DNA of 64,000 nt. It comes from Asterias rubens. Taxonomy: Eukaryota. This document shows, in pieces, positions 6,264 through 50,569 of the stretch. The stretch spans positions 20,584,001-20,648,000 of the forward strand of contig NC_047067.1 in the NCBI RefSeq assembly GCF_902459465.1, given 5' to 3'. The position numbers were made by a program, and so were the translations under genes. A model generated the notes under the pieces. It had not been told where the DNA came from. It ran no database searches and saw only the letters and a program-made list of their open reading frames with translations. Position 1 is the first letter of the stretch. Every line of letters starts with the position of its first letter.

Positions 6264-7364
6264 ATGTACACTCTGATCAGAAAGAAACTGAAATTCCTCA
6301 TAACATCATGTGCAATATGCTCCGTCGTTTTATGGTTATTTGATAAGGAATTAATGGTGGAAACGAACGACGGGTCGGTGTACAGCGACGACGTGATAAA
6401 TGCACACGATTTCCATTTTACCATTGCGAACTATGACAAATGCTGGAATGGCACCGACGCAACGATGACCCCATTCCTTCTCATACTCGTGAAAACAGGT
6501 CCACAGAACTTCTACGATCGCCAGCAGATTCGCCGGACATGGGGAGGAACGAAGATGGTTCTGAATGAACTGGTATCCACCATGTTTTTACTAGGGATGA
6601 GCAGTGATATGGAGTTAAACCAACGCATTACTAAGGAGAGTCAAGAATATGAAGATATTGTGCAAGAGAATTTCTTTGATTCCTATCATAATCTGACTAT
6701 TAAGATCATGATGGGATTGAAATGGGTCGCTACATTCTGCTCTAATGTATCCTATGTAGCGAGTGCAGATGCTGATATAATGTTAAATACAGTCAACCTT
6801 GTTAATCGGTTATTAAGTAAACCACGCAAGAGGTACGCTGAAGGTACCCGTATGAGAAATGTGGTACCAGTGAGGGACCCAAACGCACATAACGGCAAAT
6901 GGTATACTCCGTTTGAGTTGTACCCAGACCCGACGTATGCACCATTCTTCCCTGGTTCATGCTACGTGATGTCCGGTGATTTAGCCTGGTGGATCTTTCT
7001 GGAGTCCAGAAAGGTGAGGTATCTACCATGGGACGATGTCTTCTTTGGACTAGTCTTGCAGAGACTAGGTGTTGATCCAGCACACGGCGCGGGGTACGGT
7101 CTGTATGTCAAACTATCCAGAAATTTGACAATAACGTCAGTTTTAATGAAGGGAATTGGAGTATTGATACCTCACCGGGAAAATAGTACTGATGAAAGAT
7201 TGTTGCAATTGTGGAATCAAACTATGGCATTAAGCGAGCGTCGAATAATCAACTCTACCAACAGAGATGTGTCACTAGTACTATGCGGCATCATTTTGTT
7301 TTCTATACTTCTCATAATTTTCATTTTGGGATTCTTTTATATACTGGTATCGTTTAGTTTTTAG
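6264..7364 (+). CDS. Intronless GT31-family beta-1,3-glycosyltransferase, 366 aa, paralog of the previous gene, with C-terminal hydrophobic tail
   Basis: Motifs RQQIRRTWG, DSYHNLTIK, DAD (DxD), YAPFFPGSCYVMS, WDDVFFG. Basic residues plus a hydrophobic N-terminal signal-anchor. Confidence 0.92.
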   Translation: MYTLIRKKLKFLITSCAICSVVLWLFDKELMVETNDGSVYSDDVINAHDFHFTIANYDKCWNGTDATMTPFLLILVKTGPQNFYDRQQIRRTWGGTKMVLNELVSTMFLLGMSSDMELNQRITKESQEYEDIVQENFFDSYHNLTIKIMMGLKWVATFCSNVSYVASADADIMLNTVNLVNRLLSKPRKRYAEGTRMRNVVPVRDPNAHNGKWYTPFELYPDPTYAPFFPGSCYVMSGDLAWWIFLESRKVRYLPWDDVFFGLVLQRLGVDPAHGAGYGLYVKLSRNLTITSVLMKGIGVLIPHRENSTDERLLQLWNQTMALSERRIINSTNRDVSLVLCGIILFSILLIIFILGFFYILVSFSF

Positions 7365-17800: not shown

Positions 17801-20800
17801 AATCAAATGCACAAGGCATCGTGGAGAGGACTATGTCAACGTGTGTCGACTACCACTTGTATCCTTGCCAACTCCTCAAAGAGTTCATACTATTGGCAAC
17901 TCGTACCCTTTTAGAACTCGTACTCTCGTTGAACACGATTGACGTAACCACGGCTATGGCTACAGTTGACTGCAAATGGAGGACAGGGACTGACATTGTA
18001 TTATGATCTCCTCATACAGCCAGAGCCATAGCTGCTGTGGGACGCAGCTTAACTTCAATCTCCAATGTCAATGACCAGCTTCGATATCCCAACACTTATT
18101 TTTGAAAGTAACTTTTTCAAGAAGTGAGATTTTCATTTCTTGATTGGATGAGGATATTAACCTCGTTCCCAATGTGTCTATACGGAGGTAATAGTCTGCA
18201 GGGAAGGAAGCTCTACATTTATCACTTTGCTATTGTATGGCCACAAGGGAGGTAGGGTTCCAGACAGATGTAATACTCATGGGTTACTTCATGTTGAAAT
18301 GATTATCTGCTGGGTTGGATCAGACTAAGAAACGAGTCTGCAGCTGCGACTAAGTTCGAATTGTGCCCGATTACGATTCGTCAATAAAAACAATTGGGTT
18401 GTACAAAAGTATGAATTTTAATTGTGATAACTAGTACTTCGTTGTTTCTTTCTTTCAATAAAGAACCTACAGATAATGGCACCAAAATATAGATTTGTAT
18501 GTTCCCTCATTTATTTGGTCCCCGAAATATAAAACAACTGAAAGCAGCCGTACAAGCTTTTCTGAACTCTTTGCAAAGTACCTCGCCTACAATACACTGT
18601 CACAAGTGTACACATACAAAACTCTACTCCAAAATAAGTCACAAGATAACCAGAACACATGATTGATAGAAGACGGGGTACATGACGACACAATGCTTCA
18701 TGACTATTGCTTGCTCACACTGCGAGATAATGTACTTTTCATTCGTTTCTCTGTGGAGTCTTAGGCCGTGTCCGAAACGGCGACTTCGGCTACAGCTACG
18801 GCTAGATCGCGCGCGTCTGCCTATTCTTTAACACTGGTAGACGCGCTGATCTAGACGTAGCTGTAGCCGAAGTCGTCGTTTCGGACACGGCCTTACCCTG
18901 GGAAACACTCTGTAAGTCAGGTCGGCCTACTTTGTGATGAGCCCAGGGGATGAAACAATAACCCCTTCGATTAAACCATTGGCCCCTTTTTCACATGGCT
19001 GTTTAAGCATGCTTAGCATAGAAAAATATTGCACATAACCAAAATAGTTGTCCCTGATAATGACATGTTCTGGACAATTGACTAAGCAACAGCTGTTGCC
19101 GAGCAACTGCATGGACTGCATGACCCATCAGTACTGTTTCATGTGCCAGAAGTGTTTTCATCATTCTTGTGAAGAAAGTTAAAGCAAACACTATGTGAAG
19201 CTTGTTGCATTTTGTTTTGCAATACACGCATCCCTGCTTCAAAGGTGTGAACATGTATTTTGGAACCCTGCGTTTTGTTTTCTAGCCCAATTGTAGTATA
19301 TTATTTGAATGCTTTAACACAAACAAATAAAAGTTTGTATGAGCCTCAAAGGTACCAGACTATTCTTCATCAAACCTTGATTTGGTTGTATTGGCTCTTT
19401 TTGAAACCACGGCTTCGGCTTTGGATTTTGCTTCAGGCTCCGTACTCTCGTCTGAAGCCCTCAGTGTGTATTACGCACAGCACGCACGGCTGTCAAAACA
19501 ACCGCTAGCCTGAAGCCGAATCCAAAGCCGTCGTTTCAAAAAGGGACATCGGTACGAATTGAAAAACAGAAAAACCAAGATGTCAGCACCATATTTTACC
19601 TTTTTTGAGTAGATTGACTCTGTGTGCCGTATTATGCACGCTGCAATTCCATCTCTCATTCCGAAACCTGTCTTGACATTCGAAGATGCTAAGATCCAGG
19701 GCTTGCCTTAAGACGGTAGGCATCCCAGAGTCCCTGCTACACATCTTCTTTTGTCGCTTGGTAAGATAAGGGCTTTTGCAGTCAGGTGGTAGGTTACCAA
19801 CGAGAAGCCTTCTGGGCGTCGTAAGTCTGTTTTGGAATGAGACAAAAATATCTAAATTTATTTAAATTATTTAATAGACAATTTCACTCTAGAGCAATTA
19901 TTAAAATTTTGTTTAGTACATTGGGAGGGGGGAGGGGAGTCATTGAATTTGCTTGCTAGACCACGATAGTGTAAAGCGTGAGAATCATTTAAACTCGAAG
20001 TAATGTGGTTATATTATAGAAACAATTACCCAGTCAGTTTCCCTTCTGGTTTATATGGATACAGAAACAATGTCATCAAAACAAAATCAATCTGAGAAAC
20101 GTTACTGTCAGATTCGTTTATCAGATTGTGTTTTCCAATTAAGGATTATTCTTCCTGAGTGGACATAACATACCCTTCCCATGAAATATGTAAATTGCAC
20201 ATAGCGCGTGCGCACTAACGTTTTGGTTGGCAAAACGAGGGAAAATCGCACTGTTTTGTACACGATTTAGCGTCTGCTTAGTGCACAACTCTATGGCGTA
20301 TTGTATCAAAGTTTATAGAAATTTAAAGTACTTTGACACCAAGAATCTGAGGAATGTACTCGACATAATGGCGTTTGGACCAGACCGCTTATTATTCAAA
20401 GCACGTCATTGCTGTTATAAAACAAGTTTCATACTCGTACGTTGAAAGTGTTACCAGTTTTTGCCCATGCCTAGTTGTGTCACATTTATTTTCAAACTCA
20501 ATTGGATACCATCGAATCACTTGTTCTTTAATCAGACACGCCAAATACTCCAAAAGTCGGGCTAACTTGAGTTAAACCTTCCAAATATCCTGTGTGGTTT
20601 TTAGTGCTTCGTTTAAACTCATGTGAACTGTCTTCGCGGTACAAATGTTTGTTCTTCATCGTTTACAAAGCCCGGCTTGAAGTACTTGCAGCGGGCCGCC
20701 GTGTCTCACCTCACCGTAAGCTGAGTCATTTTCTCTGGCGTAAAACGTCCCGACTGTCAGGCATCTTTACCAATCCCCGGAAGTGATACATGGTGGAGTC

Positions 20801-23046: not shown

Positions 23047-24975
23047 GATAAGTGTGGTTTTATAACTCGTCCCTCTTGGTCCACTTTTACTATCAAAGAT
23101 TCCTTTCGCAATGGTGTAGAGAGCGATGATTTTTATACCGTCAGCTTCATCATATCAGACATAACAAGCGTGTGGAGGCGACACTACTGGCTGGCGTACG
23201 GGCTAGACTGCAAGAGACACAACGACGAATCCCACTATTATTTACTCGAAGCACGTGTGTTTCCAGCTCAACATGTCCTAGGCTTGTACACAATGTAAAG
23301 CATAAACCTTTATGACAAGCAATTCCAGTCGGCAGAAGTTTAGTCACCACAGTTGCCCTGTTTCTTGCCTTGTATGAGTGTCCATAGTGTCACTGTATCT
23401 TCTTGCTGCTGTGTATCATAAATAACCAGTCACGTCTTGAGACGTCGTGTACTACCATCTTGTGTGATTAGGATCTGCTCAAGCTATGATTGGTTCACAG
23501 TTTCTAGTAAGATGGGCGTGGCTATTTGTTTACCTTTTTCAGATTCGTTTGAGTATAGCGGTGTTACACATGAAGCTAACGTCTAACTGTCTTAGATTCA
23601 GTTTGGTTAAGTTCAGGATACCTTCTTCTTCTACCAGTTTCCAGTTGTTTTCACATTTTGTGTTAAAATGACAGGACTTTTGGGATGCCAGATTTTGCCA
23701 CGGATGGATTTGTTTATCATTTTTGTTTTGTTATACCACGTTATTTTATTGTAATGTTGAGTTGTACAATAAGTCATTCAAGAACATACAAAGTAAAATA
23801 ATTATCACTCATTTTTTTATATAAATATCTTAAGATACTTCTACACCAACGATGTCAAGTTTGTTCGCTAAAGAAAACAAACGAAGAATAAAGAAATACA
23901 TGCTAAAAGAACAAGGCCTTTCAAACTGTCTTTAGGTCTTGGGGGAAAGGTCTGCTTATTTTTTTCTTAGTAATGAATTGAGTCAATGGAGAGGTATCAT
24001 TATGCCCCCCCCCCTGATAGCAGAAAACCACACCCACTCTGTAGGCGCCTTATATGTCATGAAGATAGTATAGATGTATCCGCTTAGAAAACCAATCAAA
24101 CCTAACCATAACCCCCCTATAAACAGCAAGGGGTGAGTTTGGTTCTGATTTTACTACTAAACCATGAAGGTGTTATATCTCAACCTAGCTCTGCTAATAC
24201 AGCTTGCATTAACTTTATACTCTTTATGGTTTGAGGAAACAACTGTTTTTATTTATCACTTGGTGGTTCTTTTAAGAAATGCCGTCGCTCTGATGTTACT
24301 TTTTGCATTTACGATCTCGGCCATTTTATCGCATTTTTGCTTCATGATGAAGTGAATTTTGTCCATAAAATGACGTGTTTAAATAGCTTCCTGTCATTTC
24401 TTAAAATATTTCGCAAGGATACGTTTTAATGTCCGCTTTACTTTCACACGAAAGCAGAAGTTTCCTAACTAAACTAAATAACTTGACTTTTGCAATAACT
24501 GAATAAGTTGAGCTAACCATTATTACGCTATGCGTTTCGGCACCTTTGATGTCAGTGACGTCACTTAAGCATTGACAGTTTCTCGTATTTCTCAGCTTGC
24601 AGTTAAATGAAAACGCAAGGAGTTGAAAAAATAAAACAATGGATACTCCTTCAATTTTGACCAAATCCAAAACCAGCCTTCGTTCCATTCGAGTAATCTT
24701 GGACAGAATGTTTGTTGTTTGGTCACCAGACGGAAGTATAAAATGTGCCCGCCAAATGAAACTGAAGAACTAACTGTAGTCCACGGTGTGGAATTAATCC
24801 GTGTTGGGCGCAAAAATGTAGGTCAACGAGTTGCAAAGCGGGCAGGGTTTTTTAATACACAACCTTTTGTAAATATGTTTTTATATTGGCTGTTTTGTTT
24901 GTCTGAACAGTGAACAACAATTTAAAATGAATATCAAAATACATGGCATATAAAACTGCTTGATTTTGCTTTATT

Positions 24976-25009
24976 CTGAAGACCATAAGAGCATAATGAT
25001 CGAAACGTC
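24976..25009 (+). ncRNA. Decayed hammerhead-like motif
   Basis: CTGAAGA-CCATAAGAGCATAATGATC-GAAACGTC; a stem II-damaged relative of the 48311 copy. Confidence 0.4.
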
Positions 25010-27789
25010 AAGTTGTCACACAACCTGTTTTGGGGGAATAATAAAGATCCACAGAGAGATGTTTTATATGTATTACCATAGACTAAATCTCTCGCTGGGT
25101 TTGTTTATAAAATACACTACATATAGTTGAAAGTAATTACAACTTACGCCTACACATTATCGCACAAACAAATTTGCATAACAATTGTAGAACAATAACA
25201 ATAACCTACGACAGCAACGCAAAACAAAACAAAATGTTTTTAAGAGATCGGTGAGACTATCACCGATTTACGTTGATGGTCATTGGTTTTAATATTGCAA
25301 ACACTTATCTCGTGGTCCTCTTTCTCTCTGCCTCGTGTAACATCTTCGTGTAAAGCCCTATGTATCACCAGCTGACATTCCTTACTTTGATAACACTTAA
25401 TCAGGGGTGATTTATCTTGTTATCATCACCGGAAAACCAACTTTTATGAAGATTCTCCAGAACACATGAGTTTGGTAATCTGAAATGTCGCCATATATTC
25501 AGAAACCACATGGTGGCAACCTCTGCCCCCCCCCCCAAAAAAAAATGAACTTAGAGATAAGATACTAACATTATTATGAGGAATATTAATCTGCCTCAAA
25601 TGCTCTTCTTGGAAATGTGTAAATCCAACTTAATGTTTCTTGCAATGCAATACAATTCTAATTATCACAGACCTAAATGTCGTTCTATGCTGCGTTTAAT
25701 TTAATTAAGATTAATTAATTGCTTAAAGGGTAGATATTGCTCCTGAAATCTTGAGCACGATGCCAGGTTTTGTGAAGGTTTGTTTTATGATCATTTACTA
25801 AGATTAATAGTGCTTTTATTTTAATATAAATAGAGCTTTAACCAAACCGGTTCACACAAGGTTCCTTTGGATTTTTATCATCTGCATTATTTTGTTGCGT
25901 TTACAGGATGGATTCAAGAGTCAATTGGAGAAAGGGCGTGGCTTATATCTCTTTGAAGGAGAGCCACTGAAAGGCAGGATGAGAGGTAAGAAGCTTCTCT
26001 TTGATGTTATGATTTGTCTTAACTTTATACCCTATTGTCTTTCTCATGTCAATCAATCATGATGCTTTATGGTGGTACCGAACAATACTTCCCTGGCATA
26101 AAACTTTTACTTCCTAAAATGCTATTGTTCTCCGAAATCCGTCAATTTCGTTGACACATTAGCAATAACATTGGTCTAATATTTTGGTAATTTGGCGCGA
26201 TAGTTTTGTCCGGATACATCCATCAACCCGAGCAGACGACATAACAGGTGTCCAGTAGCTACCCTGGCCTAAGTCTAGTGCCCAGACGGGAACCATTGAA
26301 GTTTTAAACCCAACAATAATGACACCTGCTAGATCAGTGACGTCATGACGTCAAGCTCTGCGAATGGAAGCTTTAGGAGAAAGTCTTGTGAAGTGAAGAT
26401 AAAAGATGGCGCAACATTATGTCGCCAGACGCGATTTCTGTTGAAAGTCACTCGTCTGTTTGGATGAGTGTACTTGACAATGACATCCGCTTGTGGCCTA
26501 CTAGGTTCATCGTGCACTGTGTTGAAAACACTTAATTCTGACTCAAGATCGACAAAAGTTTTTAAAATGAGTTGTTAGCATTTCTCTGTGTGGTGGACAG
26601 GATTTTATACATCATGGTTGATTCAGGGCGATTGGTTTGATTAGATTGACTTTTAAAATTGTGCTTGTTTCAAAATAAAAGATGAGGTTAAACCAATCAT
26701 TCCGATATGTCTCTCAATGTTAATTTCGAGGAAAATGTGTCTGGATTCGTTGTTACTTTAATATGAAATTTTAAATGAATTGCTCATTGCACACTAAGTA
26801 AGAAATATATAATATGAACTATGCACCGCTCTTAAGGCAACTGGAACACTGTTTTAGATGAATCCCTCACACTACACGCTGCGTTTCTCAAAGACTACTT
26901 GAATGAATGTATCGAACACATCCTAAACACTGTAGTCCTTTCCCGTGAAAGTTTTAACATGGCTGTCCTGAAGTCACCGGACGAACAAAATTGGTTAACA
27001 CAACGGGAAATTAAATCGGTGTAAGTTAATTGGATATGTGGTAAAGTAATTTAACGTTCCAATGAATTTGGCTCTTTACCCCCCCCCCCAACCAAATCAC
27101 ATCAAGCAACACACACTAATGTGTTTAATTAAGGAGTGGCTTAACCGACAGAGGGCGCTAACCTTTTGCGTTTGACAGATTGGTTCAAAATAGGAGGGTG
27201 GTGATTTGATTAAGCGCTTTGCTTATGGAATGTTTCATAAGGATAATATGTGTAGGGCTTAAGAATATATAAGATGCTAACTGAAGACTGTACCATTGAA
27301 TTTACAATATTGTTTTGTTAGGGCAGAAAAAAACATTAAAGCAACCTTACTGTAACAGAAATCAATACCCTGTCCATTATATGACAACACAGCTTATCTT
27401 TTAAATGGAATTAGAGTAATCGAAATATCTTTTTTACTGAATTTAGCAATCCAGATTTGTCCGAAATGAGCTTTGAAACCTGCGAAGACAACAAAAAGTA
27501 CGTTTAATTATGTAGGAAGGCCCAGCCAGATGACCACCCCTCCCTGGTGCATGGTTTCCACGCCCACTCGGGAGTTATAACAATGAATAATACTTGAATA
27601 GTAGAGACTTGATGACTGTGATATTGGGGACGGTGAGCTATCGCTAAATCCCTCGTCCGTCTGTCTTTCGTGAGATAGGGACCCGTAGAGACATCGTGTG
27701 TCTGTCAACAGCACTGAGTCAAACACTTTGCAATTCCACAAACACTCGTCATATAGTATCGTTGTCGCCTTACCTCTCACGCGTACTGT

Positions 27790-27946: not shown

Positions 27947-29833
27947 TATGAGAGTGCTCACGAAAAGAACACCAGATTTTTTTTTACTTTTGATAGTCTC
28001 GCTTTGGTTTGGAGCATGACATCAAAGCTCTGAATTTCATAAAAACACTTTTGTTATGAAAGGCAATCGTCCCCCCAGCTCTTTGAGCTGCTTGAAGTAA
28101 AAATTGAGTGTTAAAACGTGTCAGTTACGCATCCATAGATTATGAAGCATTATAGGCCTTACCTTTTCACTCCTTGGATTTGCAATCCGCCAATTCATGT
28201 AGTTGCATAAGAACGAGCTTTCGCATTTAGGCATAATTCAACTATGATTTTACCAGCATTTTGTCATCAACAAATTTGCAGACAACTCAAAATCTCGTCC
28301 TGGGGTTAGAATCTATTAATAGCATTTTGATAATGAAAGACGATGAAAACAAGCGATTTGATTTAAGCAAACTTTTCTCTAACCATCTGTGAGTAAACAC
28401 TGACGCCTTTGAGTTTTTATCTTTGCAGATGTCCAGTTTATTTATAGTAACAGCTACTTGGAAAACAGAGCCAGTGTCTGAAAAAAAGTTTGGCCAGCAC
28501 ATTGGCATGGATTCAACTTGTAAGAGTTGAATTGGAACTGACGTTCTGCGTCTATCAGTCGCGCCTATCATTGTCCAGTGGCGAGTAGTGCGCCGCCTAG
28601 CCGCCCTGCCCGCCAGGTGAGTTTGAAAACTACCAAATGAAATTAATTTATCAAATCCTATAGGGACATAGGTAAAGCTCAGGGCTAACTGGCAATCAGC
28701 TGGTGCATGGCTAATGTAGGCCCAATGACAGGGGCTTACTTAGATGGCTTTAGGGGCTTTACACTGCCGTGGGGCAATGATGAAGATTTCCCCGGTGTCG
28801 GACGTTCCATTGAATCGGGGACATAGGCAGACACTTGGCCTCTGATAAAATGGAAGTACGTCTAAACCTTCCTATGTACACCATTATTCAATAATACAAA
28901 ATCGACAACGAAAGCGGAAGGACGGGAGGAGGGTTTAAGTTAATTTCACTTTAAAAGTTGAAGAAGCCGTGTTTGTCTTTGCCGTTCATTGTTGATCGCG
29001 CTGGTATCCGTTTTACTTGACACATAAACTATAGACCCCTTTGTAGGTTAACGGGGGCGGGGCGGGGCGGGCGGCCGGGGGAGGGGAGTACTGGTTTGTG
29101 GCATTGAGGGGGGGGGGCATTTCAATCTATAGTCAGAACCCGGGACTCACAACTGCCTCGATGTAATGGTTCTACCCACATAGACAGTGAGTCTCAACTC
29201 CAAACATACACACACCGTGTGGCTGTGACACAAATTACAGAACCCGTCCATCAACAAGCAAAGCCCTTACTGAGGACACGGTGATCAAGCTGATGCCATA
29301 GAAGATCTAGGCGTAACGCCAGACTGAATGTACAGATTAGCAATAATAAACGGATTGCCTCTTAAGGCTTGAAGCACACGAAAGTTTGTTCAGGGTGGTA
29401 ACTTTCAATTTACGGTAGATTGATATATATTTCCTTCCTGGTTGGAACCGCAAAGTACATTTTACCTTCAAGATGTTCAGATTTGGGTATAGGAACCCAC
29501 TTCTCTATAAATGAGGATATCAATGGTTCCCAGTCGAGATGACGGCCTTCCGGTATGTCGTAGGGTTACCACCCTAACTATCCACTTCGAGAAATACCGA
29601 ACCCTTGACTGGATACTTTGCTCAAATTGAAGCTTTCCCAAAATCAGGAAACCCTGAGGTGGAAACGATTAACACCTTCTGTTTCAATTTAGTGAGAAGT
29701 GTGTTTTTATATAAATATTATGATTGATTGATTGATTGATTGACGTGACGTAGACAATTACAGCTGTGAGGGTTGAGGGACCTTTTGGTTCATTTTTCCT
29801 GCTTACCATCTATCAATACAACATAGACGGCAC

Positions 29834-29972
29834 TAAGAAGAAACTATACCTAAAAATAGTAAACTTGCTGGTACAACCATGTGTAAATCTCTTTTGAGTG
29901 AGTGTTGGCTCTGAAAAGAGCCGGTTTGGTCTCGACGTTTCGAACAGTATACTCTGCTCGTCATCAGGAGAA
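29834..29972 (-). mobile_element. Short dispersed repeat with hammerhead motif (Penelope-like terminal-repeat relic)
   Basis: About 135 bp nearly identical to 33686-33821; contains a hammerhead fold followed by hairpin GGCTCT-TTTC-AGAGCC. Confidence 0.7.
29930..29971 (-). ncRNA. Minimal type I hammerhead ribozyme candidate
   Basis: Minus strand TCTC-CTGATGA-C-GAGCAG-AGTATA-CTGTTC-GAAAC-GTC-GAGA: intact core, 6-bp stem II, 4-bp stem I (TCTC/GAGA), palindromic ACGT in place of helix III. Confidence 0.65.
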
Positions 29973-32106
29973 TGCTGGACTGCTGGCACTGTTTGCACAT
30001 CTTTGTTATTCAGTTCAGTCATTACCTCTAATGATGTAACCACCAACCCACTTATGACATAATGATTTGTTTAGCATCTTACTCACGACTTACGAAACTT
30101 ATCAATCTGTCTTGCGCGTTAAACCGTAGCCCCCTCCCTCCCCCCTCCCTCACCCTCCCACACCCTTTCCTTTGGCTCGACTGGAGCCTGATTTACATTG
30201 GCATGATGCCAGACCGGTAGGGTAACCCAATCCCACTTTCGACTTGACAGTTTGTAATGTGTATTGATAATGGTGCAACAATTGTTTCAGTTTCACATAA
30301 TCTGTCGAAGATACCTTGTGTGCCAAATCCTTGTTTGTTTAGTTCAATATTAGAAACGAGCGAAAACTATTCCTAAATTAAAAGTGTCTTTCAAAGTCTC
30401 TGTCCTTCTCTATGATCAACCCAACTTGAAAAAGTTCAGATATATTTATTGCCTATCGTAATCAAGACAAAATAAGTGCAAAATATTCAAACTGAAGTCA
30501 ATTTGCTGACATCATTCTTGGCACAAGAATTGTACAGACTTTTAAAGTCGACGAATGGTGCCAAAAGACAGAATAGCAACAGGCTTTTTTGCTACACCTT
30601 CTTGGCAGGTGATGATGTTACACCTATCTGAGTGGCCCATAAGGATATAACAGACTCTCATCAATACGCCGCCATTATCACACACTCAGCGGAAGCTGGG
30701 CAATCTATGTCGGCAGTCCTTAAAGCACCTGTTCTAGAAGGCGAACTTAAATATCCATGCAGCAATTTGATATAAGACACCAAACCTATAAAGAGTTTAT
30801 AGACAGTCCGAAATTAAGTTCTAGTTTGTTTTGTTGCAACGTTCGTTTTCTCTGGTTGTGACGGGGCTGATGTTCTTAGAAAAAAATAATGGCAATTTCT
30901 CTGAAGTACTTCTGACTAATTTCATATGAATTTGCAAAACAAATTGTAGGAACCAGATATACATCATATGTAGACGACCAATGGCGTCAGAATTCCAAAA
31001 GAAAACAACATTGTGATTTAACAATGTCGTGACATGAACTTGATTGGTCTGGCCCACCCTGGGTGAGCTGCCCATAAAAACTCACATCATTGAGTACATA
31101 ACAAGAGAAGAAGCTTATTGGAGTCATCGCTTATGGCAATAAATGTCGACAAATTTCCGTTCGTTTTTGTTTTACGGATAAGTTCAACAAAAGTTAAACA
31201 AAGGGGCTGGTTTTTGCCAGTGTGGTGGTGGTGTAATTCAACAAACATTTAAGGCTTTCTTTTGAAATCGCATTGCATATGAAGGCATACAACCCGTTAT
31301 AGACCTAATCAGTTAGCTTTTTTCTAATACTGAAAATATTGTTTTCCCACTCATGTTTGTTTCAAAAATCATTACTTTTTTTTTTCTCTAGTTCTTACAC
31401 CGACCAACCATCTAGTTGAGAATGATAGTGGGGGGGGGGGACTTGTATCTCAAGAGCGTATAAGCATTTTTGTTTCATTCAATTACTGACATCATTGATT
31501 ATTGTTTAATTATTTATTGTTTAATTGATGCTAACAGAAAAAATAATGATGAGTGAGGAGTTGTACAAGGAGCAGTTAGTAAATATCACAACTTTTAAAA
31601 ATCTATATTATGACCTCTTTAGAAAAACAAACTTTTAAAGTCCAACAAGTGTAACCTCACTTAGTAGAAATTGTAAAAGCACACAAAACTGGTTTGTTTA
31701 GAATGTTAAATCATTTTATTTGAGCAGAAGTACTGAACATAATTGTACTTGCATGAGAGCAATGAATAATAATATTAATCAAAGTTCGCTATAGGTCATG
31801 ACTTTTGGTTTCATTGACCACATTTTTGATTTGTTTTGTCTTCCTGCAATGTGAAGAAAAAACTTCAAAACCTGTTTTAAAAATGCGTTATCTTTGTTTC
31901 AGTGTACTAAGCACCTTATTGGTGGATACATGTGCTATACACAAGACTCAATTATTATATTATTATTAGACAATTTACAGATTACCAATAAAACAACAAA
32001 AGGAAATAACAAAGATAAGTGAAGTAGGCATATTGGATTTGCTGGAATAACAATGAGCTGGCTGCTTAAAAATTAGTTGACAGAAACAAATTGTTCAAAT
32101 CTAGAA

Positions 32107-33459: not shown

Positions 33460-36400
33460 TTATAAGAGGTATACATAACATAAATACATTATTATACACG
33501 TAACAGCCATTCCTCCAAAAAGGATCCAGGTATCTTGTGATGATCTTTTTTCTATCAATCTCATTACAGTATTACTCAATCCCAACATATTCGCTACGTC
33601 TAGAATCCGTCGCTGAGTACCCTGAGAAAAACAACAACAAAAGTGATATTAAGTATTGTTTGAAGCTTTGCATGTTGTGGAGAAATAAGAAGAAACTATA
33701 AATAAATAGTAAATTTGCGGGTACAACCATGTGTAAATCTCTTACAGTGAGTGTTGGCTCTGAAAAGAGCCGGTTTGGTCTTGACGTTTCGAACAGTATA
33801 CTCTGCTCGTCTTCAGGAGAACAGAAATATTAATTTCCGAGGAGCGCTGAGGCTCAATGGTCTAGTGTGATGAGTTTAGGATACATCCGTTACAGAATGT
33901 GAGTTTGAATTCCAGTCTGGTTGGTTGTAACATTTGTATCCTTTTTTGGCAACTCGCATTCCCAACTAATTTAACCCTCCCTGTTTCTTAGGACAAACAA
34001 CACAAAGTGGAGAAGCCACCAGCTGTGCTCAATTGCAATGTAGTTTGGGCCACTGCTGGATGAGATAAGGTTCTCAATATTGCATCAATTTATGTGTAGG
34101 ATCTACTTATAAAAGAGTCCACAACACTTATAATAGAAATGTAGTGGCTTTACCCCTTTCATTGTTGGTTCATAACAAGCAACCTTACTGACAGGTTTTC
34201 TTGGGTTTCTGAGCTACAATGGTCATGATGCCTTTCGACTTCCGAAGCATTCTTGATTTTAACGTTGTACATGTGTGTGGTGGCACAACTGTGCACAGAA
34301 CTGCCAGTGTACCATGTTCAATTACCACATGGTGTCTTTTGTTCAGAACCCTAGTCAATTATATACTCAATAGTTAGACAGTAATAAAAACCACGTTATC
34401 AATCTTGATGATAGAGGATAGTTTAAAGAGAACTTCTTGGAAGTTGTATTTCTGTTTAAACTCATAAACCCAAAGGGATTGAATGTTTGTTCTTACTTTG
34501 AGTACACTTCTCTGATTGCGAAGATTCTCAATAGTAGCTGCACCTGCTCCTAATAAGTCATCAATCCCAAGATGGGCATCATGAAGGGATGTATTATGAC
34601 GTAACTCTTGGTCAATCAGGATGGATGTATTATCTTCCTATAGGAAACAAAATCAACACATCGTAAAGGATTAAGATATTATTGAATAAATTAATTTAAT
34701 TTCAATCCTCTTGTTTTTAAACAAGACACCATCAATACAACCAACTATGGACAATTAATAAAGTAATCCATTATTTGGACAATGAAATTATTGATCACAA
34801 GTAGACACTTAGTTGGATTCCTCATACTAAATACAGGTTGCTGCATCCCATGGTTTAGGGCAATAAATACAGGTTGCTGCATCCCATGGTTTGGGGCAAT
34901 AAATACAGGTTGCTGCATCCCATGGTTTGGGGGTAATTGTACAGCATGCTCCAGATGGGCAAAGCTGGCTACCATTTTTCAAAAAACTTCATTAAGAATT
35001 ATGTATGTTTGATGTTGCTTCCATAACTACATAAAAGCTTGCCACGAACCATGTGACATAACAACTGTCAGAAGTTCCTGTTGTTGGAACTTACATTTGC
35101 AACAAATCTTCTGGTTAGTAACTCTTCTCTGTCTTTGATTTCTTGTTCCTTCATGAACTGTCGATGTTGGATGTTTCTTAATGCTGCTTGTAGATGCTGG
35201 CAGTCATACTTTAATTGGTCCAATCGTCTGAAAGGTCAAAGTTCAAAGCAGAAAGTGCTGAGAAACAGTGGGGGCAGTAAAGCTAGAAAAGTCTGGATTC
35301 TGAATTGCATGATGTCACAAGTCTTGATGAGAAACAGTGGGGGCAGTAAAGCTAGAAAAGTCTGGATTCTGAATTGCATGATGTCACAAGTCTTGATGAG
35401 AAACAGTGGGGGCAGTAAAGCTAGAAAAGTCTGGATTCTGAATTGCATGATGTCACCGGTCTTGATGAGCTCAATTTCATAAAGCTGTTTAGCAGAAAAT
35501 ATTGCTTATCAGAACAATGAGTGGAGCTCAAGTAGAAACAATTATGACCTATTCAGTGATAGTCTATTCTTTTGGAGTGATTCTGGGAGATGAATTTGTG
35601 AATCAAAAGGTTTGCTACAACCATGTGACATATCTTTCTTATTATTCCTAGATTCTTCTGGATTTCATTCCATGTGAGCGACATTGTTAGGCAATTCCTG
35701 TGGTGGATTGGAGCTTCATGGATCGATGTATTCCACTCACAGTGTTAACTACATCTCAGAATGAAACTGAAGGGGACACAAAGTAATTCAGAAACTTACA
35801 ATCTAGCATTTTGTTTTCTTGTTGGGGGTTCTTTGTTGACAAGGATGTCCAGTCTCTCTAGGTTACTAACGATTCGATCAATCATCGTTTGAACCTCACT
35901 CTCTGCATCTAAATAAATAATCACAATAAAATAAATAATGACAACTCACTTCAAACTGTCTTCCATTAGTTGGCCAATGATATTCTTTTTAAATTTTCAA
36001 AGACAAAACTTTTGGACAAATGCAAAACCTTGCATCTCAATTTTGTATTACATGCATGTATCTTGCTAAAGAGGATCTCCCTGCATCTCCAATCAAGATT
36101 GGCATATTTTGGCTAGTTTAGGTTATATTTCTGCAATGAAACAAATATATGTGTTAGCTCTAAAATGTTGTCAGCTCATAGCTACTTATAAATGTATGTA
36201 TTTGATTGAGTTAATTTATTTTGGAGCTCCAGGAATACTTTATTGGTGATGGTTTTTCCCAAAGTATTGTTGAATAATAAGAACCGTTGATGTTTCTCAG
36301 CATTTTGTAAATAATAATAGTGATTTAAGGTTTAGGGACCTTTATATTTTAAGGAACAACTAAAATTAAAAGGACTTCAAAACCATAATGTAATGAATTA

Positions 36401-37206
36401 CTCTTGTCAAGAAGAGACTTACGGTGGACATTTTCGGGTGAAGCTTGTTCCACTCTTGACAGACCATTCTGGACTTCTTGAAGCAATCTTTACAAATAAA
36501 GAATACCAAGTTGAGTTTACTAAAGTAAAATTATAACATCAGTAATCAAAATGTATTCTTAAAAGGGGTTATCCAACCAACCCACTGACACATAAAACTG
36601 TGGCCATCATGTGTTAATGTTTCTGATAAACAAGGATTGCATTGGTATTTAAACTATGGTTACTATAGGACAAGTGAGGAAGAATTTAAAGAAAATACAC
36701 TGTAATAAATTCACGCACTTTACTCCCCCCCCCCCCCCCATGTAAGGTTTGCAGAAACACTGTCATAACTGCACATGGGACAATCGTGCTTAAGGTTGTG
36801 GTGTTTCTGAAAGAAGAAAACGGTGGTGTAACGAATCAACATTTTGTTATGAATGCTCCGATTGTCTTTAGAGCATTCTCATCAAATCGTTGAGTTATTA
36901 AACCCCAGGTTATTTTTAGAACCACATCAACAACAATTTGTCTACATAGTTTTACTGCAAATCTTACTAGATTGTATCTCTACACAAAGCATACCACTCA
37001 ATAAATGTCTTCAAATGTATTAAGTAACTTCATTTCATGATATTAAGAGCCAACCCACAATTTCCAAACAAACAACTTGTGTTCCACAGAGAAATACCAC
37101 AGCTCTCTACCCTTCCCAATAATATGATGTGGGGAGGGGGGGGGGGGTCAACAGTCACAGTCCCAGATGTTACTTACTTGTTTGTATCATGATACAACCG
37201 CTCCAT
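33460..37206 (-). CDS. GOSR2: Golgi SNAP receptor complex member 2 (membrin/GS27), 6 exons, 212 aa
   Basis: Exons 37206-37178, 36487-36423, 35908-35800, 35227-35095, 34637-34497, 33621-33460 (29/65/109/133/141/162 nt), all GT-AG. Translation includes [52 protein letters not shown] and a C-terminal TM. A possible 5' UTR intron lies at 37866-37274. Confidence 0.95.
33686..33821 (-). mobile_element. Second copy of the hammerhead-bearing repeat, in the last GOSR2 intron (sense)
   Basis: TCTC-CTGAAGA-C-GAGCAG-AGTATA-CTGTTC-GAAAC-GTC-AAGA at 33820-33779. Confidence 0.7.
34828..34932. repeat. 36-bp tandem repeat x3, GOSR2 intron 4
   Basis: TAAATACAGGTTGCTGCATCCCATGGTTT(A/G)GGGCAA at 34828, 34864, 34900. 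Confidence 0.9.
35259..35470. repeat. 69-bp tandem repeat x3, GOSR2 intron 3
   Basis: Units begin TGAGAAACAGTGGGGGCAG at 35259, 35328, 35397. Confidence 0.92.
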
Positions 37207-38255: not shown

Positions 38256-38609
38256 TCCAACTGTAGTTGGGTCCCAGTTGGAGCGTTACATTTTGGACGG
38301 TCCAACTATAGTTGGGACTGGGATTGCCTCTATGCATTGTAAGGCCGTGTCCGAAACGACGACTTCGGCTACAGCTACGTCTAGATCAGCGCGTCTACCA
38401 GTGTTGAAGAATAGCAGACGCGCGCGATCTAGCCGTAGCTGTAGCCGAAGTCGCCGTTTCGGACACGGCCTTAAGTACACTGATTTGCTAATTCCTTACC
38501 ATTGTATCCGGATCCTCGCTTGGTGACAGATCTCCGGATCCCAGCTATAGTTGGGCCGTCCCAACTGTAATACCCAAGCTGGGATCAGTCCCAACTACAG
38601 TTGGGACGA
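38256..38609. mobile_element. Older inverted-repeat element (CCAACTGTAGTTGGG family) interrupted by a MITE
   Basis: 38256-38320 aligns with the reverse complement of 38538-38609 (roughly three-quarters identity by eye). Confidence 0.55.
38343..38470. mobile_element. Palindromic PIF/Harbinger-like MITE in the GOSR2-ACAD11 divergent promoter region
   Basis: Same TIRs as 18764-18892; flanks TAA/TTA. Confidence 0.8.
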
Positions 38610-41800: not shown

Positions 41801-44800
41801 TCCATCCAACACTGGTCAGAATTCACTTTGTCTATTGTTTCTTAAAACCAAAATGTCCAAGATGTAAATGCAAAATAATGTCCACAAAGCGAATGTATTT
41901 ATTCCCTGCCCATTTCCCAGCTCTCCAGGGGTGGATTTCACAAAGAGTTAAGACTAGTCTTATCTCGAGTTAGGACAAGTTACTTGTCCTACTTCGAAGA
42001 CAAGCATTCTCTCTCTGGATGACACACAGTGCTGACAAGTTTAGTTGTAACTCTTTTATTGTGTCTGTTTGATTCAGCCTAAAGTAATAGCAGTCTTAGA
42101 TTGGGAGTTATCTACTCTTGGTGAACCACTGACTGATGTTGGATATGCCTGCATGCTGTACCATTACCCTCAAGACATGCCGATTCATCTTATCAACCCA
42201 AACCGTAAGCAGCTTCTTAAACTTCTAAGAAACATCTTAAGATCTACCGGTTGTCACTTGCCGAGATAATCATGTTTAGTTTACTCTACAAAAACTGGAA
42301 CTTTCTCTTTAAGTCACCCTCCTTAACTGTATGCTGTAGTTTACTGTTTGTCATGTTGATATTGTACAGAGAAACAGTTTTCAAGTCTGGAGAGTTTGGC
42401 TGGCATTCCTGATGAGCATTCATTCTTAACATCTTACTGCCAGCGTTGTTTGTTGCCTTACCCACTACCTGACTGGAACTTCTATCTGGCTCTTTGTTTC
42501 TATAAAATGGCTTCAATTGGTCAGGTGTGTACTGCTGTTTCTGTGTAACTTTCTTAGGGCATTTTTACTGAAATGCGCCCTTGAACAGGCTGCTCCTGGA
42601 GAGAGCGTAATATAAATTCAATAAATTATTATTATAATTATTATTTATTGGTTTTGATTGTTTCAGTATCCTGTGACAACAACTTAACTGAAAAACTTTA
42701 TAGCTTTTTTGATTTTGAGATAACGGTGAACATGTCTTCTTGAAACTCGGAAGTAGTGGTTCTAAGATAAATAAGAAGTGAGATCAGCCTCGAGGAACAG
42801 AGTACAGGGTTCCGCTCACTGTCAATACAGTGCCGCTAAATGTGACTTGGGATTGTTTTGTTCAACTCTCATACAAACAACCAGGGAATTTTTTTTTAAG
42901 AACTAAAAAGATATATGGAAAGTTAGTATTTTTACAGAGTCTACAACGTGAAGTTCAGATTCAAAATAAAGATTTACAAGTTATTCATGTAAGAAATGAA
43001 TACTGTTCATTTTTTGTTTCAAGGGAGTTTATTGTCGTGCTGTTCTTGGGAATGCAAGTTCATCATTTGCCAGTAATTTTGATGATGTTGTAAAGGTCAT
43101 GCTCAACACTGGACTGAAGCAGACAGCGAGGTACGGCTAATAAATAAAAGTCTTTTGACGTTCTAAGGCTGGTACCAATTGCACAAAAACTGTATACCGA
43201 TACACAAAGTATAGACAAATTAAAGATGCTATGTCAGATTTTTGGCCCCAAACTTAAAAAAATATATTTCTTTGAGTGAATGGTATTGCAAAGAGTATCA
43301 CCCACTCTAACAAAAAAAAGTTTAACTTTCACTTTTAATGGTCAGGAACCATGACAAAAATTTAAAACGTTTCTTATAAAACACATAAGAATTGGTCACG
43401 TGATATATTGTCGGGATCCCAACAAAAACTAATTTTGAGGACTTTATTTCACTGCTACTAATAATTGGCGGACTTTTTCGAGCAATGGCTCAAATGAAAG
43501 CTTGTAACTTTCTCGACCCCCATCAAAATACCTATTGAATTTTAAATCAAAATTTGTTGGTCAAATCGGCCAAAAATCTGACATAGCATCTTTAAACTAG
43601 CAGAAACAGAGTATCAGCCAGTGCCATAAAGTTTACATTATTGCGACTGGTTCACCACTTAAATTTTCATATGTTTATGTTACTCAATTTGGCTACCAGT
43701 GCAGCACACTCATAAGGAATTGATATTGTTTCAGAAAACTTCAGACCTGATGAACAGGGAAAATAGTACTTTGAAAAGGTCTATGGTTCATGAGAAAGCC
43801 GTATTAGAAAAACAGACAACTGATGATTATAAAAATTTTTATATTTTATATAAACCTGTTTGTTTGTTTGTTTGTTTGTTTGTTTGTTTGTTTCGATAAT
43901 GTGTAGCAGGACTGACGATAGTGTTGTATTTGCCAAACCATCCTCATCTCTGATGTTGGAGATGCAGCCAGTGTTAGAATCTCAACCATTATCACACCGA
44001 GCTAAAGACGTCCTCCAGAAGGTTCAAGACTTTGTTAAGAATGAAGTCCTTCCGGCTGAAGAGGTGAATCAAACTAATCAATCCTTAAGTAGGTCAGTCA
44101 TGCAGGGTTTGAAAAACCCAGGGAACCACTGGCCAGAGTCCTGTCATTTTAAGGCACAAGCAGAGCTGCCAACCTGTGCAGATTTTCCCGTCAGTTTCAA
44201 ACGATGATTTTTGGGGTTGAACAAAGAATTGACTAGAGTGGGATTCCAACCAACGACCTCTGGATTAACGTGCCGGCGCTCTACCAACTCAGCTATCTAG
44301 CCCTATATTGGTGGTGTCCCTCGTTTGTCAATATCTTTGTAACGTGAGCGCCGGCACGTTAATCCGGAGGTCATTGGTTTAAATCCCACTCTAGTCAATT
44401 CTTTGTTCAACCCCAAAAATCATTCCAAATTTCACCCAGTCAGTTTCCCTTGTGTTTATAGTAGTTTCAAATGATACAAGACTTTGGAATGCTATTAAGG
44501 TGGCATCAGATGACATCCATTGTTTGCATAGTTCTAATTCCACATGCTGCCGACTTCTATCTCCAATCACTCATTAAAGGATCATTACAGAATTGGTTTT
44601 TGCTAACAAAACAGTTGCTGACAGTAAGCACTTTATGTAATCCACCATATACATAAACTGACAAACCTGTAGAAGTTTGTGACCGATCAGCCATCTGGGC
44701 CACAAGAAAAGAGTAAAAAAACGATTACACATTTTGCATGACATCGATTTAAAAAGAAGAAAAAACGCTCACTGAGCGACAAACTCCCAACGGGAATTCA

Positions 44801-47800
44801 ATTTTATTTATTTCTCATAAAATATGACATTTCAGACAGAATATTTCAAGGGATGTTTTCTACTATCATCATCATTAGACTGTATAAGTTTTATGTAAAT
44901 TTGTGATCTTAGACAAGTTTTTTTCTTACAAATTCTGTATTATTCCTTTAAGTGAAATATAAATCGTCATCAAGCTAACATCTCTTGGACTCTTCTTTTG
45001 TTTGTACTATATTAAGATATACCTCTCCCAAGTGCATAGTGGAGCATCTATCTGGTGTGAACCTCCCATCATGGAGGAGTTGAAGACAAAGGCCAGGGCC
45101 CAAGGACTTTGGAATCTCTTCCTACCAGCGCAGAGCGGGTTTGGTCAACTTGAATATGCCTTCATGGCTGAGGCTATGGGACAATCATTCATTGGTTCAG
45201 AGCCATTCAACTGCAGTGCTCCAGGTAGGAATTGTAGCAGTTACATGTAGTCACAGTCATGTCAAAGTATTTTTATTTTTTTATTTTTGGATGCAAGTCG
45301 CCAGACACACAGGGCCTGAAGGCCACTTCAAGGTGCGGGCTACAATTATTTTATTAAAGAGGCCGTTGCCACCTACTCCTAGGGCTGAAACAGGGTTACC
45401 CCTTTACAGTCCATATGTATGTAGGCTTGGGTATCATCCATCAGAAGCCTGGCTGGTGGAGCAGAAAGCACGACCTCCCCAACTTTCAAAGCAATCATGG
45501 TTAAGTGTCTTGCTTAAGGACACAAGTGTCATGACTGGGACTCGAACCCACACTCTGCTGATCAAACACCAGAGCTTGAATCCGATGCTCTTAATTGCTA
45601 TGCCACGACACGCCATAGTTTAATAACAGATGTTTGAAGCTTTGCATAGTGTGGAAAATAACAAGGAACTGTAACTAGTAAACTGTTGAAAGCGACTACA
45701 ACCTTTGGTTTCCAAGGTCCATTTGCTTCGGTCACGGTATTATCTTTAGTTCTCATGTACATTGCTTTAACTTTGTGATGGAGTCGCATTTTCACAACTT
45801 TTACCGGACTAACCAACCTTCCCCACACCCTGAATCGAAAGGAATAATCAACCCAGTGCTAACTTAATTTGCCAATAGTTTGTTCTATTGATTCTTACAC
45901 TAGGAATTTCAAAACATCTTTTAAAGTCATCCCAGCCTCTGACCTTACTCTCACATATCATAACTGCAGGTAGAACAATGAAAAGGGTCTTTAGTCAGGA
46001 TGCTTTTCAAATGTAGATTTCTTTGTTTGGTAAACTGCAGATACTGGTAATATGGAGGTTTTACACCTTTATGGAAATGAAGCACAGAAGAAACGATGGT
46101 TAGAGCCACTACTGGATGGAACACTCAGATCCTGCTACTGTATGACAGGTAAACGTCATAACAACTTGTGTTTAGTTTAGAAAAGAATTTGTTTTGACTA
46201 GTGATTTGTTTGTTCATCACTGCATTGTTGTGGTGCATTCAAAAGAGTTAATACCTGACTGAAGTTAATTTCATCTTGGAAATATGCTTTGTTCTCTGAC
46301 GAATGTCGGATGCCAGACTTTCAGCTGCTATTATTTACTTTTCATTTGAACTTTTGTTTTAGTGTTATGGGCATTATGCAGTACTTTTATGAAAAAGATA
46401 CTACGAAACAAGTCACAGAGAAAACAGTGACGGACAACTACAATGGTTAACTCAAACCAAAAGTTGTTGATACACAAGAACTATACATTGATTTGCTTGA
46501 GTTTCCTTGTTCAGGTAAACCATTTTGATTTTCTTAAGTTTCTTTGTTCAGGTCAAACCTTTTACATCCCTGTATTTTGCAGAGCCACAAGTGGCTTCAA
46601 GTGATGCTACCAATATGGAATGTTCCATTGTGAAAGAAGGGGATACCTATGTCATCAATGGCCGGAAATGGTGGAGTAGTGGTAAGTTGTTCATGCCAAG
46701 TCATTTTTCAAGAACCACCTCCCCTCCCCCCCACCCTCGATTTGTTTTTTGAGGGGGTTCTGTTATATATATTGCCTAACATCACAAGGCCGGAGGGCCA
46801 CTTCAAGTTGAGGTCTACACTTAACTGATTTGGGCTGTTGACCCAAATCGACTGTCACCAGGAACACGTTGCTACCTACTCCTGTGGCTGAAACAGGGTT
46901 GCCCCTTCACAGTCTGTAAGGTTGTAGGCAAGGGTATCAACCACTAGGAGCCTTGCTGGTTGAGCAGAATCCTTGTTGTGGGAGGTAATACTTAACTCAT
47001 AAGATTTATGCCAATCCTAAGTTTTCAAGAGTTGCCAGAGCTACTTTGTTACAAGGGTCTTCTGTTTTAGCTAAATGGTCCAGGAATTTCACATTGACAA
47101 ATAATCTTAAGACCTGTGATAATGATGACATTGACAATTCAAAGATTAATTTTGATTCCTTAATCCGAGCTGAAGAATCCCCAAACTAAATAATGCCTGC
47201 ATGTGTGATCCACTTAATCAGTTCGAAAAGTAAAATCAAGCGATTTGAAAAGTTACCTGTTTGATTTTATCTTTTTCTAGGTGCTGGTGATCCACGCTGC
47301 AAGGTTGCTATATTAATGGGACTCACTCCTAACAAGAACAAATCCAGGTCTGTAAAAATGTACCATATTTCTTTTTTCCTTAAGTTTTAAATTTCACTGA
47401 CATACTGACATATCAATTTGTTGTGATTGTTTGTGTTAGATGTTTGAAGTCAAGTTTGTCAAACACTTACAATGAGCCATTCTTTTATTATGACACATGG
47501 GGTCGATTTCACAAAGATAGTCCTAACTTGGGACTAGTCCTAGGAGTTATTAAAAAACTCAAGGCTAGTCCTAACTTAGGACAAGTTACTCTTGTTAACT
47601 CAAGATAAGACTAGTCTTAACACTTTCTGACCTCCAACCCTGATGAGAAGGAGTGTGCCAGAACTAACTGCCCTCTTGCTTAATTTGTCTGAACTCCAAC
47701 CCTGATGAGAAGGAGTGTGTCAGAACTAACTGCCCTCTTGCTTGAACTCCAACCCTGATGAGGAGGAGTGTGCCAGAACTAACTGCCCTCTTGCTTAATT

Positions 47801-49791: not shown

Positions 49792-50263
49792 TAACTGCAG
49801 ATCTATGGAGGGGCGGGCGTGTGTCAGGACACGCCCCTAGCTGGGTTCTATGCTGGAGCTCGTAGCCTACGCATTGCTGATGGGCCTGATGAAGTACATC
49901 TTACTACTATTGGTCTGCTGGAACTCAAATCACAATCACTCAAGGCAAAGCTGTAATAACTGCAGATCTATGGAGGGGCGGGCGTGTGTCAGGACACACC
50001 CCTAGCTGGGTTCTATGCTGGAGCTCGTAGCCTACGCATTGCTGATGGGCCTGATGAAGTACATCTTACTACTATTGGTCTGCTGGAACTCAAATCACAA
50101 TCACTCAAGGCAAAGCTGTAATAACTGCAGATCTATGGAGGGGCGGGCGTGTGTCAGGACACGCCCCTAGCTGGGTTCTATGCTGGAGCTCGTAGCCTAC
50201 GCATTGCTGATAGGTCTGCTGGAACTCAAATCACAATCACTCAAGGCAAAGCTGTAATAACTG
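49633..50263 (+). repeat. 165-bp tandem repeat (about 3.8 copies) of the ACAD11 coding end and stop codons
   Basis: Units start CAGATCTATGG at 49633, 49798, 49963, 50128; the fourth copy has a net 29-bp deletion. Confidence 0.95.
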
Positions 50264-50569
50264 CCAACAAATCTTTGGATTTTTCAAGCTCTAGCTGTTG
50301 TTACTCAAGTAAAGCTGGGAACAATTTGGTTTATACAAGGGCTGTGTCTTCAAGAAACTGTAATCTGAGTGCTTGGAGTAAAAGTTAGTCTAATATTACT
50401 CAATTAATCATGATCTTTAAGGTAAAACTACATGGAACTGGGAACAGGTAATTTTACACTATCACTAGCTAAAGACAGATCTGTGAGGAAGTTTGTTCAT
50501 AGAGTGCTTGTAAGCAATATCAATCGTGGTTAACCTGTAAGAGTAATTTACGTCTATGTTTTCTCCAAA

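Follow-up and report, generated by a model that had tools for sequence, protein, structure and literature searches.

The dispersed repeat in the 64,000-nt stretch of Asterias rubens DNA analysed here (the window) belongs to a canonical EN+ Penelope-like element (PLE), and its copies in the window are truncated or solo terminal repeats (pLTRs) of that element, now decaying. The pLTR holds a compact module in which a minimal hammerhead is followed after 11 nt by a histone-type stem-loop, after a further ~10 nt by a U7-type purine box, and then by a conserved box, an AT-rich stretch and an optional 32-nt tail made of the element's first ORF codons. Judged by sequence comparison, the module has been conserved in PLEs from four genera of sea stars and from a sea urchin. 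The stem-loop and its downstream element are likely to act as a poly(A)-independent 3'-end signal of the element mRNA. We hold with considerable confidence to the explanation as a whole, namely a decaying PLE pLTR module with a weak ribozyme, a 3'-end processing signal and no function for the host. The coordinates of the features are collected in Table 1.

Table 1. Positions in the window of the module in copy c29, of the other copies of the repeat and of the neighbouring host exons.
Feature	Positions	Strand	Basis or remark
Minimal type I hammerhead of c29	29930-29971	minus	direct reading of letters, descriptor, covariation
Helix I, UCUC/GAGA, 4 bp	29971-29968 with 29933-29930	minus	
Hammerhead core CUGAUGA	29967-29961	minus	
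Extra C after the core (after A9)	29960	minus	
Helix II, GAGCAG/CUGUUC, 6 bp, one G-U, loop AGUAUA	29959-29954 with 29947-29942	minus	
GAAA; CGU; C17	29941-29938; 29937-29935; 29934	minus	
Predicted ribozyme cut	between 29934 and 29933	minus	
Histone-type stem-loop GGCUCU-UUUC-AGAGCC	29907-29922	minus	starts 11 nt past the predicted ribozyme cut
HDE-like purine box CAAAAGAGA	29888-29896	minus	10 nt past the stem-loop
Conserved box CACAUGGUUGUACC	29870-29883	minus	kept even in distant PLEs without the stem-loop
c29, 150-bp 5'-truncated pLTR insertion, no tail	29835-29984	minus	R1 131 bits; ends set by target-site duplication (TSD)
c29 TSD AGTGCC (6 bp), 5' copy	29985-29990	minus	direct reading
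c29 TSD AGTGCC, 3' copy	29829-29834	minus	direct reading
c33, pLTR module with 32-nt PLE tail (33650-33681)	33650-33821	minus	R1 120 bits; RF00032 28.2 bits
c48, second (Patiria-like) subfamily, with tail	48310-48470	plus	R1 90.7 bits; RF00032 26.1 bits
c48 TSD GGTTCTYTA (9 bp)	48301-48309 and 48471-48479		
c54, old decayed copy	54443-54558	plus	R1 36 bits
c24, old decayed copy	24964-25083	plus	R1 28.4 bits
Probable sixth copy, strongly decayed	36846-36962	plus	R1 24.8 bits, E about 6e-4
Wnt exons	8819-9403 and 9920-10255	minus	
Last coding exon, membrin/GOSR2-like gene	33463-33621	minus	

The minus strand of c29 reads as a complete minimal type I hammerhead, with the letters that an earlier, sequence-only reading had described. 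By direct reading, the G10.1-C11.1 pair is formed by G29959 with C29942, and the loop-less helix III is the palindrome ACGU (29938-29935), a dimer-competent type and of the minimal PLE kind, as had been proposed. A strict descriptor of the minimal hammerhead was then applied. It demanded the core, at most one bulged base, the G10.1-C11.1 pair, H17, a palindromic helix III with no loop, and no fewer than 4 bp in each of helices I and II. It matched the c29 site alone in 128 kb (the window, both strands) and gave no match in 300 dinucleotide-preserving shuffles (0/300).

The Rfam hammerhead families (Hammerhead_1, _3, _II, HH9 and HH10) returned no match, either in the window at E≤10 or in the related loci at E≤1. 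The Rfam hammerhead models expect a hairpin at helix III, and because they require it, the missing match reflects a limit of the models and is not counter-evidence. Covariation was evaluated in an alignment of 22 sequences with helix I, helix II and the histone-type hairpin imposed (16 pairs). In this alignment, which has few independent lineages and metagenome rows chosen for a perfect hairpin, 95.5% of the cells are paired, against 30-42% when the partners are slid. Changes on both sides are seen in 7 of the 16 pairs, two of them in the histone-type stem and the others in helices I and II (5 of 10 pairs). The Diadema hammerhead has the known U3-A8 core covariant and a helix II of GGCGAG/CUCGCC. 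It should be mentioned that the minimum free energy fold of the monomer and the cofold of two copies both gave alternative pairings and are uninformative on the active fold.

The ribozyme part of the module is already known, minimal hammerheads having been described in Penelope-like elements since 2014. In the available text of that work (Cervera & de la Pena 2014, PMC4209133), the hallmarks of the PLE type are a short helix I with a long helix II, a palindromic loop-less helix III, an unpaired base between A9 and G10.1, and a G10.1-C11.1 pair; c29 satisfies all four hallmarks as they are given there. The extra base after A9, which had been taken for a tolerated viroid-like variant, is therefore better read as one of the stated hallmarks in that text. 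The same text reports that cleavage of a single minimal hammerhead is undetectable in vitro and that dimers cleave weakly, and it contains no mention of echinoderms that we could find. For an anole PLE, ribozyme cleavage was found to depend on the element's protein, and insertion in vitro did not require the ribozyme (Frangieh et al. 2024, PMC11167929).

Six copies of the repeat were detected in the window by BLAST, a repeat search and the covariance model R1, which confirms that it is dispersed. The intact full motif is found in one of the six, c29, which is 94% identical to positions 2274-2419 of L003, a related locus described below. The hammerhead of c33 keeps its core and has a C/A mismatch at 1.1-2.1 in helix I, and the remaining copies have core or stem damage. 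The core of c48 is broken by U4 to A and 16.2 G to A, and this copy also shows compensatory changes in the stem-loop (GGUUCU/AGAACC) and in helix II; c24 has retained the core letters, with helix II and the stem-loop gone. A single intact copy among six is what neutral decay after insertion predicts. This weighs against a retrozyme-like reading, in which the repeat would be a non-autonomous family of self-cleaving RNAs that propagates itself and cuts GOSR2-Wnt9 read-through RNA, a reading that we judge improbable. The arrangement of the copies speaks against it as well: they are single and dispersed, 3.8-18 kb apart, with TSDs (c29 and c48) and a PLE tail, and no head-to-tail tandem array was found among them. 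The insertion of c29 took place by target-primed reverse transcription.

Other repeats and tRNA-like sequences were noted in the window. Adjoining c33 in the opposite orientation, positions 33840-33925 (plus strand) look by eye like the head of a tRNA-derived SINE with A- and B-box-like strings; neither Rfam nor ARAGORN called a tRNA there. An Rfam tRNA match at 44230-44302 (minus strand) lies within a 78-nt inverted repeat pair (44204-44281 and 44346-44423, 95% complementary), and ARAGORN reports an 89-nt tRNA-Leu(CAA) at 45526-45614 (minus strand). For 44204-44423 and 45526-45614, repeats derived from tRNAs are possible, as is an intron-containing tRNA gene. A near-perfect hairpin element of about 130 nt, with arms of 46-48 nt that are 96% complementary, occurs at 18763-18896 and 38339-38473; the two copies are mutually inverted, lie 19 kb apart and have a MITE-like look. 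A tandem repeat with a period of 165 nt fills 49633-50264 (about 3.8 copies, 98-100% identity), each unit with a weak, sub-threshold snoRNA-like Rfam match. Long minisatellites occupy the window ends, at 18-785 (20-nt period) and 62444-63041 (~21-nt period).

The assignment to a PLE comes from loci outside the window. Metagenome contigs were scanned with a pattern comprising the hammerhead core, GAAA and a perfect histone-type hairpin, letters that are thus fixed by selection; because the pattern fixed them, the copies so found are silent on the conservation of the core and the stem-loop. Among the 20 matches, 14 are further copies of the c29 repeat. The other matches (L002, L006, L013, L014, L017 and L018) were rejected as unrelated: they are hairpins resembling terminators or repeats of other kinds, and none has a histone ORF upstream. 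Pattern scans of viral contigs gave no match. Both c29 and many of the metagenome copies extend upstream into a common ORF-proximal sequence, a further point against the retrozyme-like reading. In L003, a 306-aa ORF stops 32 nt upstream of the hammerhead and 75 nt before the start of the hairpin, a spacing like that in histone messages, and it matches GIY-YIG with 28.8 bits (cut-off 22.6). The homologues of this ORF combine RVT_1, HTH_animal and GIY-YIG and are mostly from echinoderms.

A second set of related loci was fetched by protein homology, independently of any RNA motif, from the sea stars Asterias rubens, A. amurensis, Acanthaster planci and Patiria miniata, the crinoid Anneissia japonica, and the sea urchins Diadema setosum and Lytechinus pictus. 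In the Patiria locus L023, three direct modules (at 805, 3737 and 6217), 2.5-2.9 kb apart, separate copies of the ORF. Both RVT_1 (38.6 bits) and GIY-YIG (24.7 bits) are recognised in one of the ORF pieces, and the ORF ATG (MQSLK...) begins 25 nt past the module. In intact elements, the module thus separates the stop codon of each ORF copy from the ATG of the next. Inverted truncated partner copies were found in L009, L010, L015, L022, L025 and L027. It is noted that L023 also contains four identical modules (433-926, 3737-3858 and 6217-6338) in which A13 of the hammerhead core has become G and the first stem base of the hairpin has gone from G to A. These modules nevertheless flank long open ORF pieces; the variant is either a recently amplified crippled form or a tolerated one.

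The RT and GIY-YIG ORFs that adjoin the module, together with the tail and TSD signatures, make the repeat a member of a PLE and not a separate non-autonomous family. The claim of a non-autonomous and possibly undescribed family does not survive the comparison with L003, where the module stands behind an RT/GIY-YIG ORF, and with L023, where it flanks the full ORF. The same two loci bear out the association with PLE termini for which the sequence-only reading had called. That reading had also remarked that no RT ORF is nearby, which holds for the window itself, where no PLE, RT or endonuclease ORF was found among ORFs of at least 70 aa at 9-42 kb, and fails for the related loci, where such ORFs adjoin the module.

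About half of the copies carry the tail, which consists of 8 nt and the first ORF codons (MQSFKHHL), 32 nt in all. This tail (ATG-CAA-AGC...) is present in c33, c48, L003, L010, L015, L021 and L027 and absent in c29 and others. An optional PLE tail of 30-40 bp has been explained by two internal RT start sites near the ORF start (PMC11167929). At their other end, at least nine short copies (c33, c48, L001, L004, L008, L012, L016, L019 and L020) begin 5-7 nt before C3. Ribozyme cleavage was considered as the source of this shared 5' boundary and rejected, as the cut lies 38 nt further downstream. Random 5' truncation does not account for the boundary either; it could be explained if transcription began at the pLTR start and the RT then initiated internally, at the first pLTR-ORF junction. 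On the retrozyme-like reading, the common 5' point could instead mark a defined short unit, and a preprint that derives animal retrozymes from PLE pLTRs (Li et al. 2026) also lends that reading some support.

The second hairpin of the module, with the conserved tail behind it, had been seen in the sequence-only reading, and both are indeed present. What had gone unrecognised is that they correspond to a histone 3' stem-loop (RF00032) and a U7-type element. Three window copies are hit by the RF00032 (Histone3) model, with 32.3 bits (c29, at 29882-29927), 28.2 bits (c33) and 26.1 bits (c48), all short of the gathering score of 34; E is 2e-05 for c29, taken over the whole window, and reaches 4e-03 among the others. 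The threshold is exceeded by copies of two species whose loci had been obtained through protein homology, A. amurensis (35.7 and 35.6 bits) and Acanthaster (38.7 and 37.3 bits). Compared to the metazoan histone stem-loop, for which the consensus GGYYYU-UHUH-ARRRCC with a 6-bp stem and a 4-nt loop was used, the c29 hairpin agrees at 16 of 16 positions, including U1 and U3 of the loop. Its flanks deviate, with AAACC on the 5' side and AACA on the 3' side versus the histone consensus CCAAA and ACCCA; an A-rich 5' flank is also missing from the Acanthaster and Diadema copies. The stem occurs as GGCUCU, GGUUCU and GGCCCU, each with the matching 3' arm.

The hairpin of Acanthaster, GGUUCU-UCUC-AGAACC, is followed by CAAAAGAGA, and that of Diadema, GGCCCU-UUUC-AGGGCC, by CAAGAAAGA, which we take to be the classical sea-urchin HDE. 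Thus AAAGA stands downstream of the hairpin in three lineages (Asterias-type, Acanthaster and Diadema), and in the copies of these same three the distance from the ribozyme cut to the hairpin is 11 nt. Between c29 and Diadema, the spacer is identical at 0 of 7 positions, the hairpin at 14 of 16 and the 3' core at 8 of 8. The AAAGA within CAAAAGAGA is the complement of the UCUUU box of U7 snRNA, a box that is universally conserved (PMC5054213), the match being to this general box.

Could the hammerhead and the stem-loop be chance look-alikes, or the hairpin a remnant of a host histone gene? For such a reading one may point to the absence of an Rfam hammerhead family match and to the window hairpin scoring under the gathering threshold. 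However, the strict descriptor found nothing in any shuffle, the Histone3 match of c29 is joined by those of two further copies, and the module stands behind PLE ORFs in six echinoderm genera, with covariation. A histone remnant would also have to contend with the lack of a histone ORF nearby: none was found in the window or in the related loci, where the stem-loop follows a PLE ORF instead. We therefore regard both versions of this reading as extremely improbable.

The conserved box beyond the purine box reaches further than the stem-loop. In the form ACAYGGUGU..CC, it lies 40-60 nt upstream of the PLE start codon in elements ranging from those of echinoderms to one of a termite (window 29870-29883, L028 3678-3692 and L029 2476-2487). 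Part of the box is a palindrome, which in Diadema reads GGUGCACC. Its role may be that of a promoter, of a site for dimerisation or of one recognised by the RT. The R1 model identified the hammerhead together with this box in a Lytechinus PLE, the termite PLE L029, L028 (an ENA contig with 46% protein identity) and the crinoid L024, and no histone-type hairpin was found between the two in any of the four loci. The intervening sequence of L028 is AAUAAUAAA, and the crinoid has a different, longer hairpin that holds AAUAAA. A poly(A) signal, AAUAAA, at exactly the position of the stem-loop is seen in two relatives without it (L028 and the crinoid), a small sample. Among 11 hairpin-bearing pLTRs, neither AAUAAA nor AUUAAA was found in the stretch that runs from the hammerhead to the ATG or to the end of the element (0/11). 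This pattern fits a stem-loop/HDE cassette that would occupy the place of the poly(A) signal.

From these comparisons, the following course is proposed for the transcripts of the element. The hammerhead would be the usual weak PLE ribozyme, acting as a dimer or with the assistance of a protein. With SLBP and the U7 snRNP recruited by the stem-loop and the purine box, the ORF transcript would be cut a few bases past the hairpin, leaving a histone-like mRNA without poly(A). Any transcript cut neither in this way nor by the ribozyme would continue into the next unit and could serve as the template for reverse transcription. The U7 cut and the ribozyme cut would then be alternative fates of the transcript. 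Since all genomic copies include sequence past the putative U7 cut, the template for reverse transcription must be unprocessed read-through RNA. There are difficulties with this scheme. The two signals seem to compete, because the ribozyme cut would detach the stem-loop from the ORF, and downstream units would carry the histone-type signal in their 5' leader as well. The fixed 11-nt spacing, as seen in the letters, hints at a coupling of ribozyme and stem-loop. That an echinoderm PLE lineage has swapped its poly(A) signal for a working histone 3'-end signal, with an mRNA made by SLBP and U7, 11 nt from a hammerhead, is a tentative proposal, and we place it somewhat on the doubtful side.

The histone-like hairpin might instead be kept for a role apart from U7, either through SLBP in export, translation or stability, in helping or blocking the folding of the ribozyme, or in recognition by the RT. 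The fixed 11-nt spacing in diverged lineages, which suggests physical coupling, would suit such a role, as would the protein-assisted ribozyme of the anole PLE (PMC11167929) and hairpin flanks that depart from the histone consensus. Yet a purine box with AAAGA lies at the right downstream distance in three lineages, the poly(A) signal is missing exactly where relatives carry one, and distant PLEs that lack the hairpin still keep the ribozyme and the box. With these points on the side of U7, we consider a role apart from it rather unlikely.

In its host context, c29 lies between GOSR2 and a Wnt gene and sense to both, whose exons are on the minus strand, as had been noted from the sequence; it is ~3.5 kb downstream of the GOSR2 stop codon. 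The second sense copy, c33, is part of the last GOSR2 intron, with 28 nt left between its end and the 3' splice site 33622/33621. This places it in the branch-point region, and its histone-type processing signal is nearly intact. The sense orientation of c29 and c33 is a further point for a retrozyme-like family acting on host transcripts. By analogy with studied ribozymes, cutting of host read-through RNA by c29 is nevertheless unlikely, because single minimal hammerheads are not seen to be cleaved in vitro in the available text of PMC4209133, which also tells against the family itself, and because the anole ribozyme needs the element's protein (PMC11167929). A lone c29 hammerhead in a host RNA probably does nothing. 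Most likely, the window copies have no host function and are neutral debris.

Histone 3' processing was first worked out in sea-urchin or sea-star embryos. U7/SLBP processing is generally held to be exclusive to replication-dependent histone mRNAs (PMC5054213). In the literature searched, no paper was found that links the histone stem-loop or U7 to PLEs or to any retrotransposon, and the words 'histone' and 'stem-loop' are absent from the key PLE papers. If the proposal is true, the U7/SLBP pathway would have a natural client outside the histones, in a PLE family that keeps the signal in sea stars and a sea urchin, and this would be the first mobile element known to use the histone 3'-end pathway. 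Its expression could be tied to S phase or to the egg and early embryo, which are rich in histone mRNA. The histone-type signal would explain how the 3' ends of these PLEs are formed, and the ribozyme and U7 cuts would sort the transcripts into mRNA and reverse-transcription template. The fixed spacing would also offer a handle on the unexplained role of PLE hammerheads.

We have compared the module and its ribozyme with the known systems that they resemble. Canonical EN+ PLEs (PMC8557442, PMC11167929) share with the present element the pLTRs of tandem units, the inverted truncated partners and the optional tail of 30-40 bp. They differ from it in that here the pLTR is very short and has a histone-type stem-loop with a downstream element and no AAUAAA. 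The c29 ribozyme shows no essential difference from the minimal hammerheads in the available text of Cervera & de la Pena 2014 (PMC4209133). Both are of type I with a helix I of 4 bp, a helix II of 6 bp, the extra base, G10.1-C11.1 and an ACGU helix III, and both lie in pLTRs, mostly as scattered single copies, with U3-A8 covariant (here in Diadema). Animal non-LTR retrozymes (PMC7229834; Li et al. 2026 preprint) likewise have type I hammerheads related to PLE pLTRs. However, they form tandem arrays that give rise to circular RNAs, in contrast to the single, TSD-flanked and tailed copies of the window.

The 3' end of replication-dependent histone mRNAs is matched in the stem-loop consensus, in U1 and U3 of the loop, in an ACCA-like 3' flank and in the AAAGA purine box 10-15 nt downstream. 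In contrast to a histone 3' end, the candidate signal here follows a retrotransposon ORF, lacks the CCAAA 5' flank and has a ribozyme 11 nt upstream. Retroviral LTRs carry a poly(A) signal in both repeats, which is used at one end and ignored at the other. By analogy, the terminal repeats of retroviruses and LTR retrotransposons resemble the present pLTR in having a 3'-end signal inside the repeat, on both sides of the coding region. They rely on CPSF and poly(A) polymerase, whereas the machinery here would be the putative U7/SLBP pathway, and they belong to a different class of element.
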